A stretch of 64,000 bases of DNA from Selaginella moellendorffii (GCF_000143415.4 NW_003314319.1:1082365-1146364), one strand, 5' to 3'; positions 1,531 through 53,734 are shown, numbered from the stretch's first letter. A program made the numbers and translations. The notes: a model not told the origin generated them from the letters alone.

Positions 1531-3253
1531 GGTGGGTTTGGGGGAATCAAACAAGCCCGCTTTTTCTCGGAGAGACTGCCGTCCTGCCCGAGCTTGATAC
1601 TCCTCCCGATTTTAGCACCCAAAAATCACCCCGATTCTTGAGACGCATCAAGGATATTTACTAGCCAGACTTCCATGGTGCATTGATCTGCCACAGGAGA
1701 ACTAAATCTCTCGTACCTCTTGATTATTGCTAGTGAGAGCAGCAGGAGCTTGATGGTGCAGAACTACCACTTTCTGTTCTATCTGGAAGCGTCCCAGTTG
1801 TCACCGCACCAAATGCCACGAACTTTCAATTGTTATCTAGGGCATAAAATGAGTAACTATCACAAATATTCTTTTGCATAGCTCGAACCAAGGCACCACT
1901 GGACTACTGATCTTTCATAACATTATTAAGAAAGGAAGGCTTTAATGTGAAAAAAGCATGATCTTGTCCATAACCAATAAGAGGTGGGATAGAGGATCAG
2001 CAAGCAATCCCAAAGTGTATGCAACATTTCTACTTCCATATTTTTTATGCTAGAACCAGTGCATCTTAGATTCTTTGACAAGGAGAGGCACTAAAATAGC
2101 ATCAAACTTGTAAATAGGTACTGTGCATCACCTTGACCACATCAAAATAAAAACTAATACTGTGTTGATCTCTGGAAATTGAAGAGTAGTATAAAAAAGG
2201 CTTTTCATAGATAACAAATTTTCTTGCATTTCTGGGACATGCATATAGTGCCATTTGTTAAACTCAATGAGAATAGAACCAACACCTTTAGCCTCATAGA
2301 ATTTTGCATTGGTGACTCCACAATGGGTACTGGTGTAGGCAAGTCTACCAATTGAACAAAATTTACTTAATTTCTTGACATTCAAAATTATTGAATACAT
2401 TGTCCTATTGAAGGGTGAGCCAATAAATATATATACTTCTAGATGGTGTAAGCCTTAATCAAGTATATGTTATTAGTTCTAATATTTGTGAATTTGAGAT
2501 TTTATGGCTTAACTCTTTCTAGATTATACCATTTAAGGAGGTTTATTTATCCTATGCAAAGATTCTTCCTATTTAACAAGTAGTTTGACTTTATTGTTTA
2601 CAACAATGTCATTGCAATTGTCTTCTAAGACAATTGACTTTGTTGTAGTTGTTAAACTAGAAACTCTATATATTTACTCATTTTCTATTTTAGATTACAA
2701 TTAATTTAAAAAGTTAGAACAAGGATTAACTATTATATTCATTTTAAAAGGAACTTTTATATATATATTTAAATTTTATAATTTATTTTTGCTTTAGATA
2801 ATTGTAAACATAACAATTATATCATAAATTTATTTATTTTATATAATAAATTTAAAGTTTATAAAATTTTATTTAGGTACTCCAATGAAGTTTTAATGGT
2901 ATGGCATTTAGAAAAAGCAGTAAGAATATATCAATTTTTACTCTTTAGTGAAATTTCATAAACACTGAAAACATATATTGTGTTATAACATTACAAAGAT
3001 AGGTAATAACTCCTTATTCTACTGTTGAAAAACCACTCAAATATGTTAACAATATCATAAATGTTATCACAACAATATAAACATTTAATAATATAAGCTT
3101 TCAAGATTATTTTTTAATTTTTTATATTATGCATATCTTCAATTGAGAAAGAGTTTATTAAAAAAATTTATATATATACATTCAATATTAGATTTATAAA
3201 TATAATTCTTGTATATATTGTTATTAAGTTAAAATTTAATATTAAATATTTTT

Positions 3254-6200
3254 TGTGAGGGCCAAGTGTACGGCTATGATGCTATATAATAATATTAGCG
3301 TAGTAGGATTTTAGTAGCTGTTAGATTGATTTCAATCCAGATCACTCGCTCTTATATATAAATTAGGGTTTATGGGTTAATTGATATGTAATCTTTTGAT
3401 TATCCCTGAGGATTGTTTGGATTTGGGATTTTGGTTTACATCTAGGTTTTTCCATTTGTTTTTTCCCTTCAGGATTTTGGTTTAGATTTAGCTTTTTGCA
3501 TTATCTAGATCTCCATTTCCTTCTAGGTTTTGTCATTCCTCTTCTTTCACTCTTTCCTTTTTGTTCATCTTCATAGCAAATCAGCAATCTCCTCCTTTGA
3601 GTTAGTACAATTGCTTGATGCTATGTGTTTACAATTGAACAACCAAACTCAGTTGATAGCGGCATTCATGGCACGTGGTACAACTTCTCCTGCTCTTGGT
3701 GCCAATCCTCGCATTTAGTTGGAGTTTTTTCGTGGGAATCTGTAAGCTCCTGAGATTGGACTTCCTGGGAGGTCACTCAGCCCAATACTATTCAAACCCA
3801 AGGACGCTTAACTCCAACTATCCCAAGACCCTTAACCGATTGGAAAAAGGGGTGCACTCTTGTTCATGGGCCCTTTCCCTTTATATTTGAACCCCATGGA
3901 TCGTCTCTCGAGTCGTTCCCTTTGGTTGCTTACAATCCACCACGCTTCCCTACAAGTTCATGCCCTCGTGAACGGAAGCTAAGAGCCGCAGCTCTCTCGA
4001 GAGCCCTACTCTCTTGACACCCTACCCCTCGGGTCGAGCCTAGCAAGAGCAAACTAGACCAGCCAAATGTCAATCAATATGTGGTGGGGAATCTTCCCCT
4101 AAGCCAACCAACAGAGTCAGACCCGAGACCGCTCCGATACCAAATGTAAGCTTCTTGTGTACTATTGGTTCAATCACTTCACAGTGATTGCCACATATCA
4201 TTCTTGGGATGATACTCAACATTTGCATGAGTTTCCCACATGTCTCCAAGGGACGGCGTTGCAGTGGTACAATGGTTTGAGTGCAGCCACTTGTGGGGAT
4301 TGGAGTGTTCTCCTGGACATCTTCAAATGCACATTTGGACATGCCGACGATTGTGATGATGCCTTCCAACAATTACATCATCTTCGCCAAGGGCCATTTG
4401 AGTCGGTGATGCAATTTGGCTTTTGTTTCCGAAGTCTTTTGCTTTGTGCAGAGCCAAATATGTCGGAGCGGATTAAGCTAGGAATGTTGTGGCCAGCACT
4501 TCATCAAGATCTTGTTGGACTTATGCATGCACTTGCTCCAGCAACTCTTGACGATGTTTTTCGCTTGGCACAACATTATGAAATGTCGCCTCGTCCACTT
4601 CTTGCTGGCCATCCTTCTGCTCCTCTTCCTGTAGGCAATGGTTCTGTTCTAATGGAGGTTGGTGGTGCTGCTGCTCGAGTCCAAGGACAAGGGCAAGGAT
4701 GTGGTCATGGCCATGACGTTTGTTGTTGGGCATATGATGAAGTTGGGCATACCTATTGGCATTGTTAGCGTTTTTCGGATTGGCAACCTCCATTTCCTGG
4801 GTGGAGACTTTAGCATCAACAACATCCTATTGGTGTTGCTGTAGTGGAAGGTCTAGACACTACAATGCATCCGGGAAACAAAAAGTTGCGCTAGTAATGG
4901 AGGGACCTTGCGCAAATAATTCAATGACCCCTCCATCTTTCTTTTGGGAGTATCATCAAGGGGTTCACTCGGCATCGGTTCATTCAGTGTTTATTTTCCA
5001 AACTTGTTTTTATAACAAGAGGTCTCCTATTATTCTCTCTATATTGGTTGATACAGATTCGAGTTTATCTTCTATTGCTCAACCTATTGCCACAAGTTGC
5101 CGTTTACACTTGCGTCATGCGGCATAACCAGTTTTCATTCTTTATGGCAACAGCCGTACACATGCATGTGCATGGGATGAGGCGGACCTAGTGTGTGTGT
5201 GGGTGATCTTGAGCTTGAGTTGCAATCCTTGCGGGTGGTGCCGAGTCAAGCTTTCGACCTCATCCTTGGTATGGATTAGTTGCAGTGCAATCATGCTAAA
5301 TGTGACTTTGATGCTTCTCCCCCTTGTTTCATACTTTCTTATGTTTCATCCATTCCTCTCACTTTTGTACCTCTTCGTCCCTCTATTTCTACTTCTGCTT
5401 CCATTACTTTTGTTCCCCTATTATTTCCTTCTATGTTTCCGTCTTGTTCTTCTCTTCCCTTTTCCAGTCCCTTCAACAATCTTTGTGTTGCAGCGGTTGA
5501 CTAGCTTATGAAGGAGTATTCTGATCTCTTTGACTTTGACACATCGTCTGGGGCCAAGATTGCCACACGTCATTCAATTCCAAATAGGGATACTCGTTTA
5601 ATCAAGGTTCCTGTTCGTTGTCGGTCACCCAAAGAGATCAAGATTTTACACGCAAATATTAAAGAAATGTTAGAGAAGGGTGTTATTCGGAAGTCGCAAT
5701 GTCCTTGGGTATGTGAACCTTATCTTGTGACGAAGCCTGATGGGAGTATTCGTTTATGCATCGACTATCATCCGTTAAACGAAGTGACGTTCCCAGATGT
5801 GTACCCTCTTCTTCACACTGCTGATCTTTTGGATTGTCTAAGGCGAAGTCATTAGTTCACCAAGCTAGATCTTGCTTCTGGGTACTGGCAAGTACCAATA
5901 GCTGAAGAAGATATTCCTTAGACTGCTTTTCGTATACCATTTAGATTGTATGAGTTCTTGGTGATGCCGTTTGGTTCGTGACGTTGGTTTAAAGCTGAAG
6001 TGGTCAAAGTGCGTGTTTGGTTCCAAAGACACAACTTATCTTGGGTACTATATTTCTCGTGAGGGTTTGCAAATTGATCTTGACAAACTTGTGGCTGTTC
6101 TAAAGTTCCCTACTCTGAAGTGTGTAAATGATGTGTAGTGCTTTTTGGGCAAGGTGCAGTATCTCAGTCGCTTTGTGGATCATCTTTTTGATCGCACTGC

Positions 6201-7896
6201 ACCATTGCGAGCGTTGCTGGAGTCATCAACATCATCTTTCATCTGGCCTCCGGATTGTCAGCAGGCATTCATGGATCTCAAAGAGCTATTGACGACTCTT
6301 CCAGTTTTGGCATATCCTGACTATACTCGACCTTTTATTTTGCACATGGATGCTTTTGACATTAGTGTTGGAGAAGTGTTGATGCAAGAAAGCTTGAGTG
6401 TGCTTTGTCAGTGCCATCCCATTGTGTATATAAGCCATACATTACAACCAGCGAAGATGAACTACTCCACAATAGAGAAGGAGTGTTTAGCAACACTCTG
6501 GGGTTTTGAGAAACTTCAGGCATATCTACATGGTTCTTGGACATTACTTGAAGGTGACCATGCTGCCGTCACTTCATTAGTGAAATGGAAGAACTTCGTT
6601 AGTCGTACTGCTAGGTGGGCATATGGGACATCATCGTGTAACTAAGAAGCTGCACAGGTTTTCTATTGGCCGAAGATGTGACATGATGTTATCCGGTATG
6701 TGCATAGCTGCATTTGGTGCTAAACTCGTAATATTCCCCCTCGTGTTGTGGAAGGACGGTTGGAGTCAATTACAATTTCCCGTCCATTTGAGTTGGTGGA
6801 ATTTGATCTTATGGGACATTTCTATAGTCGATTGCTGGCAATGAGTATGTTATTATTGTTTTTGACTACTCGACTCGTTGGGTGGAAGTCGGTGCTCTTG
6901 CTAGCACCTTTGCAACTGTTGTTGGATACTTCCTCCTCAATCAAGTGGTGTTCCAGCATTCTTGTCTAGAGCAGATTCTTTCGGATAATGGTTGCACATT
7001 TATAGTTGAGGCATTTCATGTTCTGACGTCTCAATTGGGGATATGTCACACTTTCACGAGTGCTTATCATCCATAATCAGATGTTTTAGAGGAACGGCTT
7101 GTTCGGACATTCAAAAGGATGATTGCAAAGTATATGAACTTTTAGCATTCGGATTGGGATGGTTATTTGCCGTCTCTTTGGTATACATATGTCACAGGGG
7201 TGCAGAGTTCTATTGGTGCTTCACCATATAAACTCTTATATGGTCATGATCTAGTATTACCAATGGAGCTGGGTTTACTGTCGCAATTGCCACGAGCTAC
7301 CGATGCTAGGTCGTGGGATCAGTATTTGATAAGCATTCTTCCACTTGTCTGAGTAGAGTTTGCTGAACACTTAGGCCGCATACAAGTGGGACAATAACAG
7401 CACTAACACTCCCATCATTGTCCACTTGTGGAGTACAAAGTGGATGATTTAGTGTTAATTTGTTTTCCCCATCTTACGGTACATGGTTTATCTAAGGGGC
7501 TCCTTGCACAATGGAAAGGACCGTATCGGGTGTTGTGGCAAGTTGAACCACAAGTTTATGAGGTTCGGCATGACATCTAGCAGGTTGATCCTCCAGAGAT
7601 TATACATGTGCAGCGGTTGAAACGCTTTATACAAAGAGATCAGGAGCAGTTAATACCATCTATACATCTGCCAATGCCTCCTCCTAATGTTCCTCTAGAT
7701 CCCAGCCCGTCTACAAGAGAACCCTAATGATCTTCCATTATTCTGAGAGGAGGGGATGATGTGAGGGCCAAGTGTATAGCTATGATGCCATATACTAATA
7801 TTAACGTAGTGAGATTTTGGTACCCGTCAGATTGGTTTCAATTTGGACCATTCACTCTTGTATATAAGTTAGGGTTTTTGGGTTAATTGATATGCA
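3254..7896 (+). mobile_element. Decayed Ty3/gypsy LTR retrotransposon
   Basis: Diverged 137-bp direct repeats at 3254-3390 and 7760-7896 start TGTGAGGGCC. PPT gagaggagggga at about 7746-7756. Domain order: gag (4157-4768, decayed zinc knuckle), protease (LVDT near 5045), RT (KPDGSIRLCIDY, 5508-5980), RNase H (YSTIEKECLA, 6145-6620), integrase (ILSDNG, TSAYHP, SPYKLLYG), then GPY motif near 7520. Many stops and frameshifts. Confidence 0.93.
3741..4155 (-). mobile_element. TRIM family 2 nested antisense in the gypsy leader (5' LTR reduced to about 11 bp)
   Basis: On the minus strand: LTR end ...gcttaca, tRNA-iMet-type PBS TGGTATCGGAGC (4142-4131), about 125 bp of non-coding interior, PPT GAGGGGTAGGG, then a 279-bp LTR TGTCA...TTACA (4019-3741). 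Confidence 0.8.
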
Positions 7897-7973
7897 TATT
7901 TTCTGTATTCTCTTTCCATATTCCATGCACTCACAATTTAGCAACTTTATTATTATTAAAATGTTTATAAATG

Positions 7974-8783
7974 ATAAGTGATAACTGCGGACGGCAGATC
8001 AAATCCACGGTTTGCATTTAGAGGATGATCGTCGATGTGAAGAAATCCCTACATGAATGGAACAGCATCATCAAGATCCCTTCCAAAGCAACCAGCAATA
8101 TCACAAACCTTGTCAAAGTTACAGCATGGGTTGCAATAGAAACTTGCAAAGGAACCTCCACAGCAGCAGGAGCTTTGCAATCTTCTGCCGGTGTGAATCT
8201 CATCAGTCTAACCATGGATCAAAACTCCACATTTCGGCCATCCAACAAAGCCTTTAGCGCGTGGCCATACAAATGAACAAACCATGGTATTATCTGGAGG
8301 ATCATAATGTCAACGTAGTCGACTGCCTTGATACCTGAAGAGTAACAGTTTCGAGAAGAACCATCATTTGCTCGAAACGAAATGATGATGGATCCCCTTG
8401 CATTCCCGCTGCCAGCCAAATACCGGCTTGTGTAGAACCGAGACCAATCCACCCGGGCTTTCCAAGTGACTACAAGATCAAGCTCGCTGTTCATGCCAGC
8501 TTCATACTCAAGTAAAAGAGAGCCTGAAGAGGAGGCAAGCACCTGACTTGGAGCAGAGCTGACTATTGTCCATGAAGTTGATGCCTATTTCTTCACTGAG
8601 ATCTCTAGCCAAGTGCTTCGCCAAGCTCTCCTCCAGCTCTAGATAGACACTACTTGTAGTTGCAAGCGGGCACTTGCCTTCCAGCTTTGAGCGAAACATC
8701 CTGGAGAGTGTCCAGCCTTGCAGCTTGGATGACAGATCTTCTGAAACTGCTAGCTTTTGCAAAACAACTGTCAAGGTTAACAT
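7974..8783 (-). pseudogene. PIG-T: Longer, diverged, intron-containing PIG-T/GPI16 pseudogene fragment
   Basis: LTLTVVLQ...GWTLSRMFRSKLEGKCPLATTSSVYLELE...SRYLAGSGNARGSI...LQIIPWFVHLYGHAL, then a 60-nt GT-AG intron (8108-8049) and GFLHIDDHPLNANRGFDLPS, matching the Gpi16 signature KGFL..EYPPDAN.GFD. It has frameshifts and an internal stop. Confidence 0.92.
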
Positions 8784-8809
8784 CCAATTTTGAATATTAA
8801 GGCTATTGG

Positions 8810-11157
8810 GATGAAAAAAAATTTAATCAACTTATACAAAAATAACAAGATCGTTAGTATTACTACATTTTTATAGTATCCATTGCAATGACAAAAATCC
8901 ATAGTTCATACCTATCACTATATATCATTAGTATTAGCTATGATTTATTTGATTCATTTATTTTTTAAAATTACACCTTATAAATCTTTATCATTTATAT
9001 GTATTTTCTTAACAATGTAGGTATCATGTATAGTGAAATCATTGTAGAGAAATAGTTTATGTTTTTCTTAGAAAAACTTGCAAGGTGGTGAGTGACTTTA
9101 CCTAATGTAATCTATAAATCATGTAATTTTATTTTGAAATCACAACTTTGGGAATATTGTCTCATATGCAAGTTTGTCTTCAAATCAAAGTAGCTAATGC
9201 AGTAGCAAAACATTAGCACATTAGATGAGTTGCAATGATTAGCTACTATAGTTTTCACTTCTAGTTCTATCATTACCTAATCACTAAAGGATTAGAATTT
9301 CTTTACCACAAATTAGGCCATCATGAAAAGCACTCTAAAGAAAGTGTTATACATTGTCATATTCCTTTAGCTGGTTTTTGTAATACAAACATAGAAATGT
9401 ACAACAAATTTAATAAAGATTTTATATGTGCTACAATGACACAAGATATGAATCTTCCCTTTTCCTTTGAGACCATTGATAAGTTTCATATGCTACTAAG
9501 TTATTTCTCATAAAAGCAAGAACAACAATATGGTTAAAGCTTTCAAAGTTTCTTCTTCTGTTAGTTATTTTGAATTTAGTGCTGAGAAGTCCATAGAATA
9601 TATATATATATGGATGTACTAGTTATTAATTTACAAGGATTAAGTTCAAAGCAAAGGGAGTCTTTGGCTACAAAATACACTAGCAATGCAAAGGTGTGCA
9701 ATCTTAAAGTAGTGGCACAAATTCCACATTTGCAATTATAAGGATGAACACAATCCTAATAGATTCTAGAACTCTATTGTCTCCATTAAAAATTTAAATT
9801 TTTTGTACCAAATAACAAAGAATAATATATACTAAGCAAATGTATCTACCACCTTGTTAATAAAGATAAAATAGAACTAAGCTATGTGAGTTTTCTAGGA
9901 AAAGTGATTCCATATCAAGGATTGTGCCAAATTCCTAAAATTTGCTGCCTTTGTTTTTAAAGTGCTAATCCTTTGTTCTAACTTTTTAAATTAATTATAA
10001 TGAACAAAAAATTTATTACATGGATTGCCCATGGATAATTTTATATTGGGAATAGAGTTATATTTCACCAATGAGCATGATGAAATCCAAATTACAATAT
10101 CCCTTGTGTATCGAAAATTACAAATGAAAGGTTTAACTTACCTCGATTGCAATTTAGTGGGTGCTAGTTGAAACTAGCAAGGATCTGAGCTCTACTAAGA
10201 AAAGTAGAATTGCAAAGTTTTAGATGATATTTATTTAGGTTATATGATATTAATACTATTGAAAGTTAAATAGTAAATGGAAACTGTAAGTCAGTTTTTA
10301 TGAAAATGGAGCAATGCATAATTGAATTGTATCATAGAAAGTATCTGTAAGAGAAATAAATTCACCAATTATGAATATGGAATCTGTTGGTAAAGAAAGA
10401 AATTTTAATCAACTTATGGAACAATAAAAAGATCCTGTTATTATTACTACATGTTTTATACTATTCATTGCAATGACAAAAATCCATAGTTTATAATTAT
10501 TAGCTATGATTAGTATTTGATTAAAAATTTTGAAAAATCACATCTTATAAATCTTTATCATTTCTACATATTTTTTTAACAATGTAGATATCTAATATAG
10601 TGAAATTATCCTAGAGAAATAATTTATGTTTTTCTTAGAAAAATTTGCAAGCTGGTGAGTGACTTTACCTATGTAATTTATATATCATGTCATCTTATTT
10701 TGAAAGCCAATTTGTCTGAAATATTGTCTCATATGTGATAAAGTTGTCTTTAAATCAAAATAAACTAATGCACAAGCAAAACATTTGGATGAGTTTCAAT
10801 CATTGGATAATGTAGTCTTCACTTCCAGTTCTACTGTTATCTAATCACCAAATTAGAATTTATTGATCACAAATCAGGCCATCACTACTAAAAACACTTT
10901 AAAGAAAGCATTATACTTCTTTTTGCAATACAAACATAGGAATATAAAATAAATGCAATAAAGATTTTATATGTGCTACAAGGATATAAGATATAGTTGT
11001 TCTCTTTTCTTTTGACAGTATTTATAAATGTGCTACTAAATTGTTTCTAAAATAGGTAAGAACAACTACATGCTTAAAGTTTTCAAAGTTTCTCTTGCTA
11101 TTAGCTATCTTATTTTAGTGTTGAGAAGTCCATAAAATATATTTATATATACTAGTT
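8810..11157 (+). repeat. Old diverged direct duplication of about 0.8 kb (8810-9625 and 10390-11157); mirrored at about 44475-46820
   Basis: Colinear shared blocks such as cattgcaatgacaaaaatccatagtt and ggtgagtgactttaccta. AT-rich and possibly decayed exons. Confidence 0.8.
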
Positions 11158-12399
11158 ATGGGGATGGTCCAAAGTTGAGTTGAGCTCAATTCAACACAAG
11201 TCAACTCAAGTCAACATAATCAATTAGAAGTCTTACAAAGGAAATATAAATTGAACAAATGAAGGTTCTAACAAACTTTAAAATATTTAAATACGTAAAT
11301 ATTTGAGTTAAAAGTTTCTATAAGATTGAATTGTTTAAAAAAGACAAAGTTCAGAAGAATCTATCTTTTATAAAGCTATATTATTTTATTATGACTATTG
11401 TTACAGTTGTTATATTTTGATTTGACTACTTAATATTTTGAATATTTTTATAGTTGTAGATACTATTCCTTCATTCAAAAGATTTTTGAGGGTTCTTGAG
11501 AAGATGGGAAGCAAGGAAAATATAAGATGTGTGAGTAACAATTGTAGTGCAAAGGAATGTGAGAATGCTAATTTTGTTTCATTACCACAATCTCCATATT
11601 ACACTCCTATTCGTTTTTACGTTTTTATTACCCATTTGAAAATGTGGAGACCACTATCATGATTGATAAAAATGTTTTTGTTACTTCTGAAACAACAGTT
11701 TAGAGTAAAAGAAATGAAGAAATGAACAGCATGGCAGAAAGCACCAAGAAATCTACTCCATAACACTTTCCATGACATTTGTAATTTAAATATTAATTCA
11801 TATTAAAAACTGTGTTTCCTGCTTATATCACAATCCTCTCATATGATAAGACCAAGATATATTTTTGTAGTGAATCCTCATTAAAAGTTTTCGAGAGTTG
11901 TTTGTGAATAATAATAAAAGAAATTGAAATCTTTCGAAAGACTCAAAAGTAATATCACATCAAAGAATCAACTTTATCTACATTTCCAAGACTGAAAAAC
12001 AATCTCATATAAGGGAATGGTAGCGTGCCAATGTGCTCTGCCACTATAATGTGTTCTATATTTTCCTACAGTCTATTTCTCTAAACATTTGGCATGCGTA
12101 GAAAAGAATATATGTGTAGTAAAGTAGGATTTCATTATAAAGATAAAGCATGTGTATACACGATAATCTAAAATTCTAGAAGCTCTTATGTTTATAAGCA
12201 AGCTATGATTATGAAGCCCCATTTCCAAAACTGACATTTAAAGAATCTGAGTATCGTCAGTGTTATAATAAATAAACCTTATTCCCGAGACTAAAACTTA
12301 GTATATAAACTATCTAGAAAAGTTATAGTCATTATAGTTTTTTTGTTCTCCTTGAGCTCCTTGGAAGTTTGTATTGAAATGGCTCGAAGGAAAGTCACT

Positions 12400-13260
12400 G
12401 CTACTTGTACTTAGCCCCCCAACATTTTATATTAATCTCCACCTCCATCCCCAAGTTCTACCAACATTCTACCTTCACCTCCATATAATAATCCTTTTTC
12501 TACTGAGGGCTTTAGTGAAGTTGAACTAGAGCTCCTTATATATGAAATTCTGAATCTTATTATTAGATAGGGATTGCCTCCAATGCTTCAAAAGCAATGC
12601 TACATGTTTTTGCATGTTCTAGATCCTGACATAGCGGGACTACTTGAAAGCACAAAACACTATTACATTCGGTGTCTAATATACTACTTTTTATTAGACA
12701 AGTGGCTTTATGGGTTTACAAACTTTTCTTGAGCACTGTAGGAATTGCCCAATGGTGGGTCTGGAAAATGTGCATATGTGGATGTACAATAGATTCAAGA
12801 ATGAGTTACAGACATATACCTTCTCACCTTCACTTATAGTTTGCATGATGTAGATAGCCCTTCTCATCATGTTCTCAAATAGTTCTGGTAGTCCTTTCTC
12901 TTTGTTCATCAAGCAGACATTAAGGAAATCCAGAGTTTCTATCTGTCGCTTATACGGAAGCTTCAATTTTTCGATATTATAAATTATATCATCTGGAGTT
13001 TTGTTCACTACAAAAGTAAATATGCATAATTGAGAAAAATGAAGTGTGACAAAAAAACTTACATTCATGAGAAGAAATTTCAGCTATAGTCTCTAGCCAC
13101 TCCTTCGGCCTACGATTGTCTGCAATGTATCTTAATTTCTTCAACTTTGAAGAATTTGCATGCCGAATTTTATGCTCAATTTGTACGAACTCAGTTGAGA
13201 GCTCTTCCCGACTCTTCTCCTGATATACAAGTTCATAAGCATCTTATTTGACCTTCACCA
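12400..13260 (-). pseudogene. Decayed unidentified coding segment (mirror about 42370-43230+; diverged paralog 24474-25260+)
   Basis: The paralogs conserve a protein-like frame (NRRPKEWLETIAEISS / IYNIxKLKLPYK.QIETL.FLNV.LMN.EKGL.ELFENMMR) around an intron-like segment. Confidence 0.4.
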
Positions 13261-13555
13261 AAGGTTAAAAACCAAAACAATTAAAAGAAGCCCTTATAAA
13301 ATGAAAGGGAAAGACATACTTTGCACCATATAGCGAGCATAAAACTAATTGGGTTGTTGAACAAAGTTATACCGTCATTTTGAGTGCGTGAGTGATGAAG
13401 TGTTGCAAGATCATCATCATAATGTTCGCAGATGTCATCCTCACTCAAGTCTGCTAAAAATTGAAGTTGCTCGATGTCATGGATAAAGTTTTACTTTTGA
13501 ACAGCAAACTGCCCAAGCCTGGATTTAAACACAACAAAACAAGTTAAAGTGGAGT

Positions 13556-18470: not shown

Positions 18471-18887
18471 ATATCTTTCATGTATCCTGGCAAAAACGAA
18501 GTAGCAAAGTTGCTGCATTGCAAGCTATGCTACACTTTCTTGTGTTTGCTACTAAAGCTAGCAATAAGGAGAAACTTTAAGCAAAAGATGTATAAGTGGA
18601 GAACTTCTGTTCCACAATAGTAGGGGTAATGTTGCCTTCACAAGTGCCAACTTTTTCCACTGTAACTCCTGGAGGGAGGTGAGTATTGTTTTTCCTTCTC
18701 TTGTTCAAGTGCTGGTGTTTCTGCTTTACTTGGAGAGTTGATCTTAGTTTTTATTATTTGTTTAAACAATGTTGCAAGTTTTTAGAAAACTATTTGAATT
18801 AGGATGAGGGAATTGTTATCTAATTATGCTAAAAAATGCATAAAAAGATGTTATTAACTAACTAAACTTTATAAACTATAACCTAAA

Positions 18888-40906: not shown

Positions 40907-42074
40907 TGTAAATGACTAATTTTTTTATTCTACTTTAGTCACTTAACCACACCTCTGACCACTTGGAGGAGTCTCATTCACAACCTCTATAAGTCCAATT
41001 TAGGATGTGGGGCTTGCTAGCCCCGAGAATGGCATTCATGCCACTCAACCATTGCACTAGGTCCAAGTGCTTCGCGTGTCTGATCCCATGACCGACACCC
41101 CAAGGTATCATTGACATATCAACCCATTACTCTAAGGCCATACCCATTCACCTTGGTGACACCGGTGGTCCAACACCACCTACATCACAGTCCTGTCTCT
41201 CAAAGACTGGGGCATCCATCCATGAGTGATCATCTTAGATTCCGCATCCTTAGGATGCCCACAAACATGGGGAATAGCCTTCCTAATATCCCTTTTACAG
41301 CCTTTGGGTGTTTTAGCCATGGGCTTAGAGCGAGGTTTCATTGAGCCACGCTAGGTATCCAAGTAGGTAATGCCACCCATACTTGGATTGGGAGCATTGA
41401 CCATTCGATCTCTCGGGGGAACTAGAGCCGACTTTTGAACACTTCACCAAGTTACCTCGCTTGTTGGTTCATATTCACTTTAGCCTTGGACTTCCCAATG
41501 GTTATCTCATCACCCAATACTTGGGTATAGCCTTCCTGGGCCAAATTAACCTTTTCTGGCCAAACTGGCTCCACTAGGGTTTAACCCCCATACTCTCCTT
41601 GTAGCCCCCCCCCTTAGGGGACAATCGCTTTGGGCTTTCACCCAACAGCCTATATTAGTATTTGGACTCGGACTGGGACTTGAACTCGGACTCGAACTCA
41701 GACTCGATCTCAATCTCGGACTTAGACTTGGACTCGGTCTCGGTCTCGGTCTCGGTTCCATCTCAGACTCCATCTCGAGTCCATCTCAGACTCCATCTTG
41801 GACTCCATCTCAAGTCCATCTCGAACTCCATCTTAGACTCTGTCTCGAGTCTTCCATATATCATGTGTTGGTCCTTTTGTGTCCCTTCTCTAGAGACTCA
41901 CTTACTGCTTGCTTCGTGCTCATTCCTCGAGCCCTTCGTTTAGGAGTTTCACTCCTGCTCTCAACTTTTCAAGTCGGAGCTTTTAGTCCAAACATGTTAC
42001 GCTCATTTGGCTTTCATTTCGGCCACTACCACATGGCACCCACTTTGGGGCCTAAGGATTTTATGTTTAACATA
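40907..42074 (-). mobile_element. Mirror copy of the family C LTR
   Basis: Reverse complement of 13556-14725. Confidence 0.75.
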
Positions 42075-45000
42075 ACTCCACTTTAACTTGTTTTGTTGTG
42101 TTTAAATCCAGGCTTGGGCAGTTTGCTGTTCAAAAGTAAAACTTTATCCATGACATCGAGCAACTTCAATTTTTAGCAGACTTGAGTGAGGATGACATCT
42201 GCGAACATTATGATGATGATCTTGCAACACTTCATCACTCACGCACTCAAAATGACGGTATAACTTTGTTCAACAACCCAATTAGTTTTATGCTCGCTAT
42301 ATGGTGCAAAGTATGTCTTTCCCTTTCATTTTATAAGGGCTTCTTTTAATTGTTTTGGTTTTTAACCTTTGGTGAAGGTCAAATAAGATGTTTATGAACT
42401 TGTATATCGGGAGAAGAGTCGGGAAGAGCTCTCAACTGAGTTCGTACAAATTGAGCATAAAATTCGACATGCAAATTCTTCAAAGTTGAAGAAATTAAGA
42501 TACATTGCAGACAATCGTAGGCCGAAGGAGTGGCTAGAGACTATAGCTGAAATTTCTTCTCATGAATGTAAGTTTTTTTGTCACACTTCATTTTTCTCAA
42601 TTATGCATATTTACTTTTGTAGTGAACAAAACTCCAGATGATATAATTTATAATATCGAAAAATTGAAGCTTCCGTATAAACGACAGATAGAAACTCTGG
42701 ATTTCCTTAATGTCTGCTTGATGAACAAAGAGAAAGGACTACTAGAACTATTTGAGAACATGATGAGAAGGGCTATCTACATCATGCAAACTATAAGTGA
42801 AGGTGAGAAGGTATATGTCTGTAACTCATTCTTGAATCTATTGTACATCCACATATGCACATTTTCCAGACCCACCATTGGGCAATTCCTACAGTGCTCA
42901 AGAAAAGTTTGTAAACCCATAAAGCCACTTGTCTAAGAAAAAGTAGTATATTAGACACCGAATGTAATAGTGTTTTGTGCTTTCAAGTAGTCCCGCTATG
43001 TCAGGAGCAAGATCTTGCAAAAACATGTGGCATTGCTTTTGAAGCATTGGAGGCAATCCCTATCTAATAATAAGATTCAGAATTTCATATATAAGGAGCT
43101 CTAGTTCAACTTCACTAAAGCCCTCAGTAGAAAAAGGATTATTATATGGAGGTGAAAGTAGAATGTTGGTAGAACTTGGGGATGGAGGTGGAGATTAATA
43201 TAAAATGTTGGGGGGCTAAGTACAAGTAGTAGTGGCTTTCCTTCGAGCCATTTCAATACAAACTTCCAAGGAGCTCAAGAAGAACAAAAAAACTATAATG
43301 ACTATAACTTTTCTAGATAGTTTATATACTAAGTTTTAGTCTCGGGAATAAGGTTTATTTATTATAACACTGACGATACTCAGATTCTTTAAATGTCAAT
43401 TTTGGAAATGGGGCTTCATAATCATAGCTTGCTTATAAACATAAGAGCTTCTAGAATTTTAGATTATCGTGTATACACATGCTTTATCATTATAATGAAA
43501 TCCTACTTTACTACACATATATTCTTTTCTACGCATGCCAAATGTTTAGAGAAATAGACTGTAGGAAAATATAGAACACATTATAGTGGCAGAGCACATT
43601 GGCACGCTACCATTCCCTTATATGAGATTGTTTTTCAGTCTTGGAAATGTAGATAAAGTTGATTCTTTGATGTGATATTACTTTTGAGTCTTTCGAAAGA
43701 TTTCAATTTCTTTTATTATTATTCACAAACAACTCTCGAAAACTTTTAATGAGGATTCACTACAAAATATATATCTTGGTCTTATCATATGAGAGGATTG
43801 TGATATAAGCAGGAAACACAGTTTTTAATATGAATTAATATTTAAATTACAAATGTCATGGAAAGTGTTATGGAGTAGATTTCTTGGTGCTTTCTGCCAT
43901 GCTGTTCATTTCTTCATTTCTTTTACTCTAAACTGTTGTTTCAGAAGTAACAGAAACATTTTTATCAATCATGATAGTGGTCTCCACATTTTCAAATGGG
44001 TAATAAAAACGTAAAAACGAATAGGAGTGTAATATGGAGATTGTGGTAATGAAACAAAATTAGAATTCTCACATTCCTTTGCACTACAATTGTTACTCAC
44101 ACATATTGTATTTTCCTTGCTTCCCATCTTCTCAAGAACCCTCAAAAATCTTTTGAATGAAGGAATAGTATCTACAACTATAAAAATATTCAAAATATTA
44201 AGTAGTCAAATCAAAATATAACAACTGTAACAATAGTCATAATAAAATAATATAGCTTTATAAAAGATAGATTTTTCTGAACTTTGTCTTTTTTAAACAA
44301 TTCAATCTTATAGAAACTTTTAACTCAAATATTTACGTATTTAAATATTTTAAAGTTTGTTAGAACCTTCATTTGTTCAATTTATATTTCCTTTGTAAGA
44401 CTTCTAATTGATTATGTTGACTTGAGTTGACTTGTGTTGAATTGAGCTCAACTCAACTTTGGACTATCCCCATAACTAGTATATATAAATACATTTTATG
44501 GACTTCTCAACACTAAAATAAGATAGCTAATAGCAAGAGAAACTTTGAAAACTTTAAGCATGTAGTTGTTCTTACCTATTTTAGAAACAATTTAGTAGCA
44601 CATTTATAAATACTGTCAAAAGAAAAGAGAACAACTATATCTTATACCCTTGTAGCACATATAAAATCTTTATTGCATTTATTTTATATTCCTATGTTTG
44701 TATTGCAAAAAGAAGTATAATGCTTTCTTTAAAGTGTTTTTAGTAGTGATGGCCTGATTTGTGATCAATAAATTCTAATTTGGTGATTAGATAACAGTAG
44801 AACTGGAAGTGAAGACTACATTATCCAATGATTGAAACTCATCCAAATGTTTTGCTTGTGCATTAGTTTATTTTGATTTAAAGACAACTTTATCACATAT
44901 GAGACAATATTTCAGACAAATTGGCTTTCAAAATAAGATGACATGATATATAAATTACATAGGTAAAGTCACTCACCAGCTTGCAAATTTTTCTAAGAAA

Positions 45001-46847
45001 AACATAAATTATTTCTCTAGGATAATTTCACTATATTAGATATCTACATTCTTAAAAAAATATGTAGAAATGATGAAGATTTATAAGATGTGATTTTTCA
45101 AAATTTTTAATCAAATACTAATCATAGCTAATAATTATAAACTATGGATTTTTGTCATTGCAATGAATAGTATAAAACATGTAGTAATAATAACAGGATC
45201 TTTTTATTGTTCCATAAGTTGATTAAAATTTCTTTCTTTACCAACAGATTCCATATTCATAATTGGTGAATTTATTTCTCTTATAGATACTTTCTATGAT
45301 ACAATTCAATTATGCATTGCTCCATTTTCATAAAAACTGACTTACAGTTTCCATTTACTATTTAACTTTCAATAGTATTAATATCATATAACCTAAATAA
45401 ATATCATCTAAAACTTTGCAATTCTACTTTTCTTAGTAGAGCTCAGATCCTTGCTAGTTTCAACTAGCACCCACTAAATTGCAATCGAGGTAAGTTAAAC
45501 CTTTCATTTGTAATTTTCGATACACAAGGGATATTGTAATTTGGATCTCATCATGCTCATTGGTGAAATATAACTCTATTCCCAATATAAAATTATCCAT
45601 GGGCAATCCATGTAATAAATTTTTTGTTCATTATAATTAATTTAAAAAGTTAGAACAAAGGATTAGCACTTTAAAAACAAAGGCAGCAAATTTTAGGAAT
45701 TTGGCACAATCCTTGATATGGAATCACTTTTCCTAGAAAACTCACATAGCTTAGTTCTATTTTATCTTTATTAACAAGGTGGTAGATACATTTGCTTAGT
45801 ATATATTATTCTTTGTTATTTGGTACAAAAAATTTAAATTTTTAATGGAGACAATAGAGTTCTAGAATCTATTAGGATTGTGTTCATCCTTATAATTGCA
45901 AATGTGGAATTTGTGCCACTACTTTAAGATTGCACACCTTTGCATTGCTAGTGTATTTTGTAGCCAAAGACTCCCTTTGCTTTGAACTTAATCCTTGTAA
46001 ATTAATAACTAGTACATCCATATATATATATATTCTATGGACTTCTCAGCACTAAATTCAAAATAACTAACAGAAGAAGAAACTTTGAAAGCTTTAACCA
46101 TATTGTTGTTCTTGCTTTTATGAGAAATAACTTAGTAGCATATGAAACTTATCAATGGTCTCAAAGGAAAAGGGAAGATTCATATCTTGTGTCATTGTAG
46201 CACATATAAAATCTTTATTAAATTTGTTGTACATTTCTATGTTTGTATTACAAAAACCAGCTAAAGGAATATGACAATGTATAACACTTTCTTTAGAGTG
46301 CTTTTCATGATGGCCTAATTTGTGGTAAAGAAATTCTAATCCTTTAGTGATTAGGTAATGATAGAATTAGAAGTGAAAACTATAGTAGCCAATCATTGCA
46401 ACTCATCTAATGTGCTAATGTTTTGCTACTGCATTAGCTACTTTGATTTGAAGACAAACTTGCATATGAGACAATATTCCCAAAGTTGTGATTTCAAAAT
46501 AAAATTACATGATTTATAGATTACATTAGGTAAAGTCACTCACCACCTTGCAAGTTTTTCTAAGAAAAACATAAACTATTTCTCTACAATGATTTCACTA
46601 TACATGATACCTACATTGTTAAGAAAATACATATAAATGATAAAGATTTATAAGGTGTAATTTTAAAAAATAAATGAATCAAATAAATCATAGCTAATAC
46701 TAATGATATATAGTGATAGGTATGAACTATGGATTTTTGTCATTGCAATGGATACTATAAAAATGTAGTAATACTAACGATCTTGTTATTTTTGTATAAG
46801 TTGATTAAATTTTTTTTCATCCCAATAGCCTTAATATTCAAAATTGG

Positions 46848-47657
46848 ATGTTAACCTTGACAGTTGTTTTGCAAAAGCTAGCAGTTTCAGAAGATCTGTC
46901 ATCCAAGCTGCAAGGCTGGACACTCTCCAGGATGTTTCGCTCAAAGCTGGAAGGCAAGTGCCCGCTTGCAACTACAAGTAGTGTCTATCTAGAGCTGGAG
47001 GAGAGCTTGGCGAAGCACTTGGCTAGAGATCTCAGTGAAGAAATAGGCATCAACTTCATGGACAATAGTCAGCTCTGCTCCAAGTCAGGTGCTTGCCTCC
47101 TCTTCAGGCTCTCTTTTACTTGAGTATGAAGCTGGCATGAACAGCGAGCTTGATCTTGTAGTCACTTGGAAAGCCCGGGTGGATTGGTCTCGGTTCTACA
47201 CAAGCCGGTATTTGGCTGGCAGCGGGAATGCAAGGGGATCCATCATCATTTCGTTTCGAGCAAATGATGGTTCTTCTCGAAACTGTTACTCTTCAGGTAT
47301 CAAGGCAGTCGACTACGTTGACATTATGATCCTCCAGATAATACCATGGTTTGTTCATTTGTATGGCCACGCGCTAAAGGCTTTGTTGGATGGCCGAAAT
47401 GTGGAGTTTTGATCCATGGTTAGATTGATGAGATTCACACCGGCAGAAGATTGCAAAGCTCCTGCTGCTGTGGAGGTTCCTTTGCAAGTTTCTATTGCAA
47501 CCCATGCTGTAACTTTGACAAGGTTTGTGATATTGCTGGTTGCTTTGGAAGGGATCTTGATGATGCTGTTCCATTCATGTAGGGATTTCTTCACATCGAC
47601 GATCATCCTCTAAATGCAAACCGTGGATTTGATCTGCCGTCCACAGTTATCACTTAT
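46848..47657 (+). pseudogene. PIG-T: Mirror copy of the longer PIG-T/GPI16 pseudogene fragment
   Basis: Intron 47523-47582 (gtttgtg...catgtag) joins DK to GFLHIDDHPLNANRGFDLPSTVIT. Stop codon at 47410-47412. Confidence 0.92.
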
Positions 47658-47734
47658 CATTTATAAACATTTTAATAATAATAAAGTTGCTAAATTGTGA
47701 GTGCATGGAATATGGAAAGAGAATACAGAAAATA

Positions 47735-50700
47735 TGCATATCAATTAACCCAAAAACCCTAACTTATATACAAGAGTGAATGGTCCAAATTGAAACCAAT
47801 CTGACGGGTACCAAAATCCCACTACGTTAATATTAGTATATGGCATCATAGCCATACACTTGGCCCTCACATCATCCCCTCCTCTCAGAATAATGGAAGA
47901 TCATTAGGGTTCTCTTGTAGATGGGCTGGGATCTAGAGGAACATTAGGAGGAGGCATTGGCAGATGTATAGATGGTATTAACTGCTCCTGATCTCTTTGT
48001 ATAAAGCGTTTCAACCTTTGCACATGTATAATCTCTGGAGGATCAACCTGCTAGATGTCATGCCGAACCTCATAAACTTGTGGTTCAACTTGCCACAACA
48101 CCCGATACGGTCCTTTCCACTGTGCAAGGAGCCCCTTAGATAAACCATGTACCGTAAGATGGGGAAAACAAATTAACACTAAATCATCCACTTTGTACTC
48201 CACAAGTGGACAATGATGGGAGTGTTAGCGCTGTTATTGTCCCACTTGTATGCGGCCTAAGTGTTCAGCAAACTCTACTCAGACAAGTGGAAGAATGCTT
48301 ATCAAATACTGATCCCACGACCTAGCATCGGTAGCTCGTGGCAATTGCGACAGTAAACCCAGCTCCATTGGTAATACTAGATCATGACCATATAAGAGTT
48401 TATATGGTGAAGCACCAATAGAACTCTGCACCCCTGTGACATATGTATACCGAAGAGACGGCAAATAACCATCCCAATCCGAATGCTAAAAGTTCATATA
48501 CTTTGCAATCATCCTTTTGAATGTCCGAACAAGCCGTTCCTCTAAAACATCTGATTATGGATGATAAGCACTCGTGAAAGTGTGATATATCCCCAATTGA
48601 GACGTCAGAACATGAAATGCCTCAACTATAAATGTGCAACCATTATCCGAAAGAATCTGCTCTAGACAAGAATGCTGGAACACCACTTGATTGAGGAGGA
48701 AGTATCCAACAACAGTTGCAAAGGTGCTAGCAAGAGCACCAACTTCCACCCAACGAGTCGAGTAGTCAAAAACAATAATAACATACTCATTGCCAGCAAT
48801 CGACTATGGAAAGGTCCCATAAGATCAAATTCCACCAACTCAAATGGACGGGAAATTGTAATTGACTCCAACCGTCCTTCCACAACACGAGGGGGAATAT
48901 TACGAGTTTGGCACCAAATGCAGCTATGCACATACCGGATAACATCATGTCACATCTTCGGCCAATAGAAAACCTGTGCAGCTTCTTAGTTACACGATGA
49001 TGTCCCATATGCCCACCTAGCAGTACGACTAACGAAGTTCTTCCATTTCACTAATGAAGTGACGGCAACATGGTCACCTTCAAGTAATGTCCAAGAACCA
49101 TGTAGATATGCCTGAAGTTTCTCAAAACCCCAGAGTGTTGCTAAACACTCCTTCTCTATTGTGGAGTAGTTCATCTTCGCTGGTTGTAATGTATGGCTTA
49201 TATACACAATGGGATGGCACTGACAAAGCACACTCAAGCTTTCTTGCATCAACACTTCTCCAACACTAATGTCAAAAGCATCCATGTGCAAAATAAAAGG
49301 TCGAGTATAGTCAGGATATGCCAAAACTGGAGGAGTCGTCAATAGCTCTTTGAGATCCATGAATGCCTGCTGACAATCCGGAGACCAGATGAAAGATGAT
49401 GTTGATGACTCCAGCAACGCTTGCAATGGTGCAGTGCGATCAAAAAGATGATCCACAAAGCGACTGAGATACTGCACCTTGCCCAAAAAGCACTACACAT
49501 CATTTACACACTTCAGAGTAGGGAACTTTAGAACAACCACAAGTTTGTCAAGATCAATTTGCAAACCCTCACGAGAAATATAGTACCCAAGATAAGTTGT
49601 GTCCTTGGAACCAAATACGTACTTTGACCACTTCAACTTTAAACCAACGTCACGAACCAAACGGCATCACCAAGAACTCATACAATCTAAATGGTATACG
49701 AAAAGCAGTCTAAGGAATATCTTCTTCAGCTATTGGTACTTGCCAGTACCCAGAAGCAAGATCTAGCTTGGTGAACTAATGACTTCGCCTTAGACAATCC
49801 AAAAGATCAGCAGTGTGAAGAAGAGGGTACACATCTGGGAACGTCACTTCGTTTAACGGATGATAGTCGATGCATAAACGAATACTCCCATCAGGCTTCG
49901 TCACAAGATAAGGTTCACATACCCAAGGACATTGCGACTTCCGAATAACACCCTTCTCTAACATTTCTTTAATATTTGCGTGTAAAATCTTGATCTCTTT
50001 GGGTGACCGACAACGAACAGGAACCTTGATTAAACGAGCATCCCTATTTGGAATTGGATGACGTGTGGCAATCTTGGCCCCAGACGATGTGTCAAAGTCA
50101 AAGAGATCAGAATACTCCTTCATAAGCTAGTCAACCGCTGCAACACAAAGATTGTTGAAGGGACTGGAAAAGGGAAGAGAAGAACAAGACGGAAACATAG
50201 AAGGAAATAATAGGGGAACAAAAGTAATGGAAGCAGAAGTAGAAATAGAGGGACGAAGAAGTACAAAAGTGAGAGGAATGGATGAAACATAAGAAAGTAT
50301 GAAACAAGGGGGAGAAGCCTCAAAGTCACATTTAGCATGATTGCACTGCAACTAATCCATACCAAGGATGAGGTCGAAAGCTTGACTCGGCACCACCCGC
50401 AAGGATTGCAACTCAAGCTCAAGATCACCCACACACACAACTAGGTCCGCCTCATCCCATGCACATGCATGTGTACGGCTATTGCCATAAAGAATGAAAA
50501 CTGGTTATGCCGCATGACGCAAGTGTAAACGGCAACTTGTGGCAATAGGTTGAGCAATAGAAGATAAACTCGAATCTGTATCAACCAATATAGAGAGAAT
50601 AATAGGAGACCTCTTGTTATAAAAACGATTTTGGAAAATAAACACTGAATGAACCAATGCCGAGTGAACCCCTTGATGATACTCCCAAAAGAAAGATGGA

Positions 50701-52378
50701 GGGGTCATTGAATTATTTGCGCAAGGTCCCTCCATTACTAGCGCAACTTTTCGTTTCCCGGATGCATTGTAGTGTCTAGACCTTCCACTACAGCAACACC
50801 AACAGGATGTTGTTGATGCCAAAGTCTCCACCCAGGAAATGGAGGTTGCCAATCCGAAAAACGCTAACAATGCCAATAGGTATGCCCAACTTCATCATAT
50901 GCCCAACAACAAACGTCATGGCCATGACCACATCCTTGCCCTTGTCCTTGGACTCGAGCAGCAGCACCACCAACCTCCATTGGAACAGAACCATTGCCTA
51001 CAGGAAGAGGAGTAGAAGGATGGCCAACAAGAAGTGGACGAGGCGACATCTCATAATGTTGTGCCAAGCGAAAAACATCGTCAAGAGTTGCTGGAGCAAG
51101 TGCATGCATAAGTCCAACAAGATCTTGATGAAGTGCTGGCCACAACATTCCTAGCTTAATCCGCTCCGACATATTTGGCTCCGCACAAAGCAAAAGACTT
51201 CGGAAACGAAAGCTAAATTGCATCACTGACTCAAATGGCCCTTGGCGAAGATGATGTAATTGTTGGAAGGCATCATCACAATCGTCGGCATGTCCAAATG
51301 TGCATTTGAAGATGTCCGGGAGAACACTCCAATCCCCACAAGTGGCTGCACTCAAACCATTGTACCACTGCAACGCCGTCCCTTGGAGACATGTGGGAAA
51401 CTCATGCAAATGTTGAGTATCATCCCAAGAATGATATGTGGCAATCACTGTGAAGTGATTGAACCAATAGTACACAAGGAGCTTACATTTGGTATCGGAG
51501 CGGTCTCGGGTCTGACTCTGTTGGTTGGTTTAGGGGAAGATTCCCCACCACATATTGATTGACATCTAGCTGGTCTAGTTTGCTCTTGCTAGGCTCGACC
51601 TGAGGGGTAGGGTGTCAAGAGAGCGGGGCTCTCGAGAGAGCTGCGGCTCTCAGCTTCCGTTCACGAGGGCATGAACTTGTAGGGAAGCGTGGTGGATTGT
51701 AAGCAACCAAAGGGAACGACTCGAGAGACGATCTATGGGGTTCAAATATAAAGGGAAAGGGCCCATGAACAAGAGTGCACCCCTTTTTCCAATCGGTTAA
51801 GGGTCTTGGGATAGTTGGAGTTAAGCGTCCTTGGGTTTGAATAGTATTGGGCTGGGTGACCTCCCGGGAAGTCCAATCTCAGGAGCTTACAGATTCCCAC
51901 GAAAAAACTCCAACTAAATGCGAGGATTGGCACCAAGAGCAGGAGAAGTTGTACCACGTGCCATGAATGCCGCTATCAACTGAGTTTGGTTGTTCAATTG
52001 TAAACACATAGCATTAAGCAATTGTACTAACTCAAAGGAGGAGATTGCTGATTTGCTATGAAGATGAACAAAAAGGAAAGAGTGAAAGAAGAGGAATGAC
52101 AAAAGCTAGAAGGAAATGGAGATCTAGATAATGCAAAAAGCTAAATCTAAACCAAAATCCTGAAGGGAAAAAACAAATGGAAAAACCTAGATGTAAACCA
52201 AAATCCCAAATCCAAACAATCCTCAAGGATAATCAAAAGATTACATATCAATTAACCCATAAACCCTAGTTTATATATAAGAGCGAGTGATCTGGATTGA
52301 AATCAATCTAACAGCTACTAAAATCCTACTATGCTAATATTATTATATAGCATCATAGCCGTACACTTGGCCCTCACA
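47735..52378 (-). mobile_element. Mirror copy of the decayed Ty3/gypsy element
   Basis: Reverse complement of 3254-7896 with the same lesions. Confidence 0.93.
51477..51891 (+). mobile_element. Mirror copy of TRIM family 2
   Basis: LTR remnant aggagcttaca 51477-51487, PBS 51490-51501, PPT 51602-51612, LTR 51613-51891. Confidence 0.8.
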
Positions 52379-53734
52379 AAAAATATTTAATATTAAATTT
52401 TAACTTAATAACAATATATACAAGAATTATATTTATATATCTAATATTGAATGTATATATATAAATTTTTTTAATAAAATCTTTCTCAATTGAAGATATG
52501 CATAATATAAAAAATTAAAAAATAATCTTGAAAGCTTATATTATTAAATGTTTATATTGTTGTGATAACATTTATGATATTTTTAGCATATTTGAGTGGT
52601 TTTTCAACAGTAGAATAAGGAGTTATTACCTATCTTTATAATGTTATAACACAATATATGTTTTCAGTGTTTATGAAATTTCACTAAAGAGTAAAAATTG
52701 ATATATTCTTACTGCTTTTTCTAAATGCCACACCATTAAAACTTCATTGGAGTACCTAAATAAAATTTTATAAACTTTAAATTTATTATATAAAATAAAT
52801 AAATTTATGATATAATTGTTATGTTTACAATTATCTAAAGCAAAAATAAATTATAAAATTTAAATATATATATAAAATTTCCTTTTAAAATGAATATAAT
52901 AGTTAATCCTTGTTCTAACTTTTTAAATTAATTGTAATCTAAAATAGAAAATGAGTAAATATATAGAGTTTCTAGTTTAACAACTACAACAAAGTCAATT
53001 GTCTTAGAAGACAATTGCAATGACATTGTTGTAAACAATAAAGTCAAACTACTTGTTAAATAGGAGGAATCTTTGCATAGGATAAATAAACCTCCTTAAA
53101 TGGTATAATCTAGAAAGAGTTAAGCCATAAAATCTCAAATTCACAAATATTAGAACTAATAACATATACTTGATTAAGGCTTACACCATCTAGAAGTATA
53201 TATATTTATTGGCTCACCCTTCAATAGGACAATGTATTCAATAATTTTGAATGTCAAGAAATTAAGTAAATTTTGTTCAATTGGTAGACTTGCCTACACC
53301 AGTACCCATTGTGGAGTCATTAATGCAAAATTCTATGAGGCTAAAGGTGTTGGTTCTATTCTCATTGAGCTTAACAAATGGCACTATACGCATGTCCCAG
53401 AAATGCAAGAAAATTTGTTATCTATGAAAAGCCTTTTTTATCTTACTCTTCAATTTCCAGAGATCAACACAGTATTACTTTTTATTTTGATGTGGTCAAG
53501 GTGATGCACAGTACTTATTTACAAGTTTGATGCTATTTTAGTGCCTCTCGTATTTATAATTTATAAACATGTTTATAATTTATAAACTTTCTTAAACCTT
53601 TTCTAGTATATTCTTTTTTATTCTACCATCTAATGGTTGATATGCAATAAAATTAATCTTGTATATATAAATTACAAACATGCTTATAATTATAAACTTT
53701 ATTTGATCAATTGGATTAATAAGTAATAATAAAA

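Follow-up and report, generated by a model that had tools for sequence, protein, structure and literature searches.

Are the two arms of the giant near-perfect palindrome found in the genome assembly of Selaginella moellendorffii carried by one DNA molecule, or are they two haplotypes placed head to head by the assembler? The palindrome lies in a stretch of 64,000 nucleotides (nt; GCF_000143415.4, NW_003314319.1:1082365-1146364), hereafter called the window, in which all positions are counted. An initial annotation of this sequence had proposed a recent inverted duplication or flip-flop recombination, with the caveat that two joined haplotypes would look similar. We find that the locus has the overall order X1' U X2 – spacer – X3' U' X4, in which each arm consists of a long body (U or its inverse U') flanked by inverted copies of a repeat, X. 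The reading that we favour, at a probability of about 0.45, is a true and fairly young inverted duplication produced by fold-back in transposon-rich DNA; that both 23-kb arms sit on one molecule has roughly even odds. What the sequence shows directly is the layout of the locus, the greater age of its innermost repeat, one sharp junction and insertions that are private to one arm.

Layout of the palindrome and divergence of its arms

Self-comparison of the window confirmed the giant palindrome, as three mutually collinear inverted blocks: 2083-16149 pairs with 53549-39489 (98.76% identity), 15851-22183 pairs with 39691-33359 (99.2%, ungapped) and 22181-23370 pairs with 28264-27099 (95.9%). A match of 21 kb at 99% identity cannot have arisen by chance. 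The left arm occupies positions 2-23370 and is cut by the window edge, the right arm extends from 27099 to at least 56079, each being at least 23.4 kb long, and between them lies a 3.7-kb spacer (23371-27098, no strand assigned), which does contain no N, as first described. The limits originally given to the palindrome, 2083 and 53549, do not mark its outer end: past a 230-nt insertion with a 91-nt repeat (53550-53870) and an N gap (53871-54299) the mirror continues, with 54320-56079 being the inverse of 1749-2 at 98.8%, and we conclude from this continuation that the left arm is truncated by the start of the window.

The arm bodies are U (2227-19426, + strand, 17.2 kb) and its inverted copy U' (36116-53405, - strand). 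X1' (2-2226, - strand), the outer copy of the left side, is truncated by the window start and is the inverse of 19427-21664 at 98.7%; X2 (19427-23370, + strand) is the inner copy of the left arm and includes a GC-rich core. X3' (- strand) is interrupted by an inserted Ty3/gypsy element, which leaves a distal part at 27099-28264 and, beyond the insertion, a core with the proximal part at 33357-36115. With the distal part the right arm begins next to the spacer, and no gap separates this part from the spacer and the left arm, all three being in one contig. X4 (+ strand) comprises a proximal end (53406-53870), which carries X1'-type diagnostic bases and is broken by a 230-nt AT-rich insertion followed by a 91-nt X repeat, a core (54300-57159), and a distal part that is given here together with the sequence after it (57966-59352), which resembles 22938-25726 in direct, not mirrored, orientation (92-94% identity), apart from a segment that is 1.7 kb long in one and 0.3 kb in the other. 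At the U-side ends the diagnostic bases group X3' with X2 and X4 with X1', which indicates that the block X1'-U-X2 was inverted as one piece.

Global alignment of the two arms yields 197 mismatches over about 21.3 kb, or 0.93% (161 transitions and 36 transversions, with 40 mismatches at CpG-type sites), and eight indels, one of them a 96-nt unit. The initial annotation had listed single-nucleotide differences, small indels, one 96-nt unit and one 5.1-kb insertion as the only differences between the arms; all of these are present, the 5.1-kb insertion being a Ty3/gypsy element private to the right arm, and the right arm also has the 230-nt insertion to itself. Divergence is unevenly distributed. 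One near-identity tract, 18743-21968 and its mirror 33574-36799, has a single mismatch in 3.2 kb (Poisson P = 3e-12 at the mean divergence), and a second one, 8206-10084 and its mirror 45547-47425, has two mismatches in 1.9 kb; outside these tracts the arms differ by 1.09%. For the second tract, gene conversion, constraint and allelic identity are all candidate causes. The cores of X are alike at 99.5% or more in all four copies.

Contig structure and the reality of the centre

The window contains three N runs, at 29592-29691, 53871-54299 and 57160-57965. The first contig (a, up to 29591) runs without any gap through the entire left arm, the spacer with both its junctions and the innermost 2.5 kb of the right arm; the second (b, 29692-53870) holds the remainder of that arm, its arm sequence beginning at 33357. 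A third contig (c, 54300-57159), which carries the X4 core, is 2.9 kb long, lies between two N gaps and consists of X sequence only, and the fourth (d) starts at 57966.

The join between contigs a and b is sound. The gap 29592-29691 falls inside the inserted Ty3/gypsy element and not within arm sequence. This element (28265-33356, - strand, 5.1 kb; gag, protease, reverse transcriptase (RT), RNase H and integrase by Pfam) has TG..CA termini and a 4-5-bp target duplication, and its flanks match adjacent positions of the uninterrupted X2. The open reading frames (ORFs) on either side of the gap are collinear and on the same strand, and align to one related polyprotein, the first up to residue 1119 and the second from residue 1157; of the roughly 37 residues that separate them, some are encoded by the 73 determined bases that adjoin the gap. 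The gap has an arbitrary length, which does not fix a reading frame across it, and is preceded at 35 nt by a stop codon. As the gypsy flanks match adjacent X positions with a target duplication and the polyprotein is collinear, we accept the join, at which a few tens of bases are missing. We rejected the idea that stray haplotigs were dropped between true neighbours, as contigs a and b meet within one gypsy element in one X copy.

The part of the right arm that lies in contig a has a signature of its own: it differs from the left arm at 16 of the innermost 295 positions and by two indels, of 10 and 15 nt. Since the centre is one contig that carries its own variants, an inverted X copy genuinely exists 3.7 kb from X2 and the centre of the palindrome is real. 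The haplotype-join caveat of the initial annotation is nevertheless weighty, given a two-haplotype assembly and an arm divergence near the allelic level. We rejected as unlikely one form of it, in which the two haplotypes were placed next to each other and wrongly joined within the spacer: the sequences that follow X2 and X4 are not allele-like, being 92-94% identical with large indels and with a T-family element inverted at 83%, and the required join has no shared repeat.

A minor feature of this contig structure is the end of contig b (53550-53870), where the 230-nt AT-rich insertion has internal inverted repeats and the 91-nt second X copy fills the space between it and the N gap; a small insertion that made a long duplication and an assembly error at the contig end are the two candidate explanations. 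Long ORFs predicted on both strands at 56928-58088 were discarded, being artefacts of translating the N run 57160-57965.

A proposed fold-back origin of the right arm

The anatomy of the centre is what points to a mechanism. The innermost part of the arms is an older inverted repeat, 23076-23370 (+ strand) with 27099-27393, in which 16 of 295 nt are mismatched, so that it is 5.4% diverged versus about 1% elsewhere (P = 1.7e-8, Fisher test). Arm homology then ends sharply at 23370/27099: X2 and X4 continue alike beyond this point, and X3' alone breaks, between 27098 and 27099. Fold-back (hairpin-primed) inverted duplications form at double-strand breaks near inverted repeats in yeast, in Tetrahymena and in cancer amplicons (PMC10622511; review PMC7999016). 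We favour fold-back priming here because the innermost repeat is older than the arms and because there is one abrupt junction (PMC10622511). The locus resembles such duplications in its long head-to-head arms, its asymmetric single-copy centre, its older and imperfect flanking inverted repeat and its one abrupt novel junction. It differs from them in that the priming repeat would be about 295 nt long with a 3.7-kb loop, instead of the usual few to tens of bases, and in that the Selaginella event, with about 1% divergence, is old and lies in the interior of a plant scaffold, its outer end (a second junction or a telomere) not being seen.

The sequence of events could have been as follows. The locus before the event would have had inverted X copies around the 17-kb U and, to the right of X2 at a distance of 3.7 kb, a short X fragment in inverted orientation. 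If the DNA then broke on the right-hand side of this fragment and was resected, the fragment could have annealed back onto X2, and synthesis primed by this fold-back would have copied X2, U and X1' in reverse to give the right arm. The 3.7 kb that separated the two annealed repeats would have remained as the asymmetric centre. Later, the right arm would have gained the gypsy element, the 230-nt insertion and one 96-nt unit, and the arms would have drifted about 1% apart. Gene conversion may have kept two tracts nearly identical, among them the one with the GC-rich X core, a core that would have been kept so in all four copies.

Two further findings support a true duplication: the related X/PIG-T cluster on two other scaffolds (see below) is also rich in X-type genes, and every concrete mis-assembly path that we built conflicts with some detail of the sequence. 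Several observations weigh against it. The outer end of the duplication is not seen, as the left arm leaves the window. The arm divergence, 0.93% overall and 1.09% outside the tracts, is close to the allelic level, which is 1.5% genome-wide. Contig b (29692-53870) is tied to the centre solely by the 3.2-kb near-identity tract, in which one base is mismatched. Within the terminal 220 nt of X3', nine sites have the X4 variant instead of the X2 variant, and these nine sites in the innermost part of X3' require an extra step if the arm was made by a single copying event. Finally, in the X-type cluster of proteins (at 90% identity) the four window copies are the only members on the 1.26-Mb scaffold, and no near-identical copy is found on a partner scaffold. 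The recent inverted duplication of the initial annotation thus gains from a centre whose anatomy fits fold-back priming, and is weakened by a near-allelic arm divergence and by a right arm that is mostly a separate contig. Flip-flop recombination, also put forward there, is mechanistically possible, given the inverted X copies at the ends of each arm, but leaves the spacer unexplained. Nothing in the sequence favours the very long double-stranded RNA that read-through transcription was suggested to yield, the arms being dead transposons.

If the duplication is true, the locus is a clean base-level record, from a plant genome, of how a short and widely spaced inverted repeat caused over 23 kb to be duplicated, and of a repeat core homogenised across four copies. 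It would be useful for studies of genome instability, as a structure of a known kind that involves no new principle.

A possible allelic origin of the right arm

The S. moellendorffii assembly (212.6 Mb) consists of two haplotypes, each of about 106 Mb and with 98.5% identity to the other (PMC7801247, PMC3680378, PMC8839085), and false segmental duplications that derive from separately assembled haplotypes are a known class of error (Kelley and Salzberg 2010, PMC2864568; Ko et al. 2022, PMC9516828). A fold-back mis-assembly of haplotypes is therefore a serious contender, to which we give clearly less than even odds. The real chromosome would then have only X2–spacer–X3', with arms of up to about 4.6 kb; the assembler would have switched haplotype inside the 3.2-kb identity and walked back through X2, U and X1', and the right arm beyond about 36799 would be the allele. 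The arm divergence outside the identity tracts is compatible with this, and the gypsy-tagged X3' is connected with the remainder of its arm through the tract 33574-36799 alone. As this tract exceeds a Sanger read, and also the 3-kb clones, a switch inside it would leave no trace. The four X cores, alike at 99.5% or more, also speak for such a switch, and so does the arrangement of the right arm, which forms a contig of its own between gaps and is followed by the 2.9-kb contig made of X sequence only.

The census of annotated proteins points the same way. The annotated proteins, grouped in clusters at 90% identity, revealed no allelic scaffold that carries proteins of the X or the 422871 type, a result that speaks at the protein level only. 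A true palindrome would therefore imply that the region is collapsed, missing or deleted in the other haplotype. Many genes of the S. moellendorffii assembly have no second annotated allele. The related X/PIG-T cluster presents the normal two-haplotype picture, as each of seven proteins is encoded twice, at two loci on a scaffold pair of 523,344 and 507,213 bp.

The same explanation meets three difficulties. It requires an undetected chimeric contig. It predicts that the allelic spacer and X3' were left over elsewhere, and the protein cluster contains no such copy: the 9.4-kb scaffold does have an X copy, which bears the A159 marker of the other, related cluster. Lastly, the published cases of this error are adjacent duplicate contigs and not head-to-head arms around a gap-free centre (PMC2864568). 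The locus shares with the split-haplotype cases a heterozygous, Sanger-assembled genome, a divergence of about the allelic level and a duplicate contig bounded by gaps; no other allelic copy was found among the annotated proteins. It differs from them in that the copies are inverted and not neighbours in the same direction, in that one gap-free contig includes the centre together with 2.5 kb of the second copy, and in that the error would require a chimeric join hidden in a 3.2-kb identical repeat. If the palindrome is an artefact, it calls for caution when the S. moellendorffii v1.0 assembly, which is in wide use, serves for counts of duplications, hairpin-RNA loci or gene copies, and the four annotated X-type genes of the window (SELMODRAFT_422868 to 422870 and a fourth model) could be two.

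Older duplications at the locus

The left contig contains older inverted repeats, X1'/X2 and a second pair at 1977-2567 and 18472-17904 (85% identity), which show that real inverted duplications have arisen at this locus earlier, a point in favour of a true duplication here too. The relations among the X copies also raise the question of whether a direct duplication came before the inversion. In this scenario, [X' U X + following sequence] was duplicated in tandem and the U of one copy was then inverted through the flanking inverted X copies, which results in the same letter order as the palindrome. The sequence after X4 (58180-59352) is indeed directly related to that after X2 (23152-25726), site 20649 is G in X1' and X3' and A in X2 and X4, and inverted repeats of at least 3.3 kb at 98.7% around U would ease such an inversion. 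The tandem pairing is backed by that one site only, and X3' has a unique sharp break at 27099, which this scenario does not account for. In addition, the sequences after X2 and X4 are 92-94% identical, differ by the segment of 1.7 kb versus 0.3 kb and have no direct similarity left beyond 25726/59352, yet U and U' are 99% alike; a single tandem duplication event misfits because the bodies and the following sequences have diverged to such different extents. We therefore consider a tandem duplication followed by inversion to be improbable.

Segments 23371-23610 and 25324-25726 of the spacer extend the X family, being 92-94% identical to 58399-58627 and 58939-59352, and the spacer also contains pieces of a second repeat family, T; it has no internal symmetry overall and no recognisable coding content. 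A 68-nt inverted-repeat pair in the spacer (23608-23675 and 25843-25910, 90% identity) brackets about 2.3 kb that are mostly absent after X4, and this bracketed segment may be a non-autonomous DNA transposon.

A broader reading combines these layers with fold-back: the palindrome would be real and the youngest of three nested generations of inverted duplication (85%, 93-99% and 99% identity), its core homogenised in four copies by gene conversion, and it would have multiplied a young PIG-T-derived gene family. Such a palindrome, which one haplotype alone might carry, would be the autosomal equivalent, in a plant, of those on sex chromosomes. We regard this as doubtful. Sex-chromosome palindromes have arms of tens of kilobases and a spacer of a few kilobases, and their arms, which carry testis genes, are kept at a divergence of about 0.03% by arm-to-arm gene conversion. 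The Selaginella palindrome is similar to them in the sizes of arms and spacer and in near-identity tracts that suggest conversion. It is unlike them in having arms that are about 1% apart and made of dead transposons, and conversion would here be deduced from two identity tracts only.

The X repeat and its gene models

Repeat X is at least 3.3 kb long, with a core of 50% GC, and contains a decayed piece of a PIG-T (Gpi16) gene. Exact exon matching places annotated gene models in its copies. SELMODRAFT_422868 and SELMODRAFT_422869, which encode one identical protein (P0033), are at 21844-20016 (- strand) in X2 and at 33698-35526 (+ strand) in X3', and SELMODRAFT_422870 is at 56259-54431 (- strand) in the X4 core. 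A fourth X-type model (P0034, + strand) lies in X1' at 1-1638, with exons at 1-369 and 1420-1638, its first exons being to the left of the window. These four models and SELMODRAFT_422871 are all on one 1,263,218-bp scaffold. The X gene model is 237 amino acids long and is partly decayed PIG-T (Gpi16) sequence, in which no Pfam domain was detected; a 208-amino-acid ORF of the GC-rich X core matches S. moellendorffii proteins at 95-99% identity. X-type proteins with 97-100% identity occur on at least five scaffolds, of 1.26 Mb, 523 kb, 507 kb, 54 kb and 9.4 kb, and RefSeq lists isoforms at a related X/PIG-T locus. The X gene models may represent a young gene family that originated from a gene fragment and was spread by segmental duplication.

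Content of the arm bodies

U is made up of a dead gypsy element, a PIG-T fragment, satellite-bearing T repeats and AT-rich filler. The dead Ty3/gypsy element is at about 4.1-6.6 kb (Pfam Retrotrans_gag and RT_RNaseH; tblastn with its pol ORF), and the PIG-T (Gpi16) gene fragment is at 8021-8801 (- strand; Pfam Gpi16); U' carries the gene model SELMODRAFT_422871 at 46830-47610 (+ strand; exact exon matching). A 203-amino-acid gag-like ORF from U, with six arm-specific differences, had no match when used as a protein query. The arm content is thus dead transposons and PIG-T-derived gene models, that is, non-functional repeat DNA with no evident function.

This content bears on a last explanation, namely a single huge mobile element with kilobase terminal inverted repeats (a foldback or giant terminal-inverted-repeat transposon) or an inverted repeat of the organelle type. 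Apart from the long inverted repeats around a central segment, nothing suggests it, and we consider it highly improbable. Dead transposons and gene fragments that are unrelated to one another make up the arms, no transposase was found, and the X1'/X2 homology stops inside an older repeat and not at an element terminus. No rRNA, no tRNA and no member of any Rfam family was matched in the window, which for this reason we take to be nuclear DNA, and a plastid or other organellar inverted repeat was rejected, as the arms are without an rRNA operon and tRNA genes.

Repeats within the arms and the gypsy insertion

The T-family repeats of U are at 12820-14725, where tandem-repeat analysis detected a GAGATGGAGTC-type satellite. 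This satellite, with periods of 12, 23, 35 and 46 nt, lies inside T repeats at 13779-13880, 41750-41851, 59675-60250, 61374-61651 and 62136-62374. Copies of the T family, 77-86% identical, are found in both arms, in the spacer and to the right of the palindrome. The 96-nt tandem repeat that distinguishes the arms has 3.1 copies in the left arm (15848-16149) versus 4.2 in the right arm (39394-39793), and its unit is an internal inverted repeat that could form a hairpin. U also contains a pair of direct repeats, 8784-9611 and 10365-11150, with 77% identity; the near-identity tract 8206-10084 overlaps both the PIG-T fragment gene and these repeats.

The Ty3/gypsy insertion of X3' has mismatched terminal repeats: the candidates are 254 nt long on the left versus 104 nt on the right, with about 11-15 terminal bases in common. 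The element may be a recombinant, or its sequence a consensus mixed from several copies. When its polyprotein was used as a protein query, the top match had 53% identity and no match was from Selaginella. A second copy of the 104-nt sequence is present at 32964-33067, and a perfect 137-nt tandem duplication (32619-32892) surrounds the start of gag.

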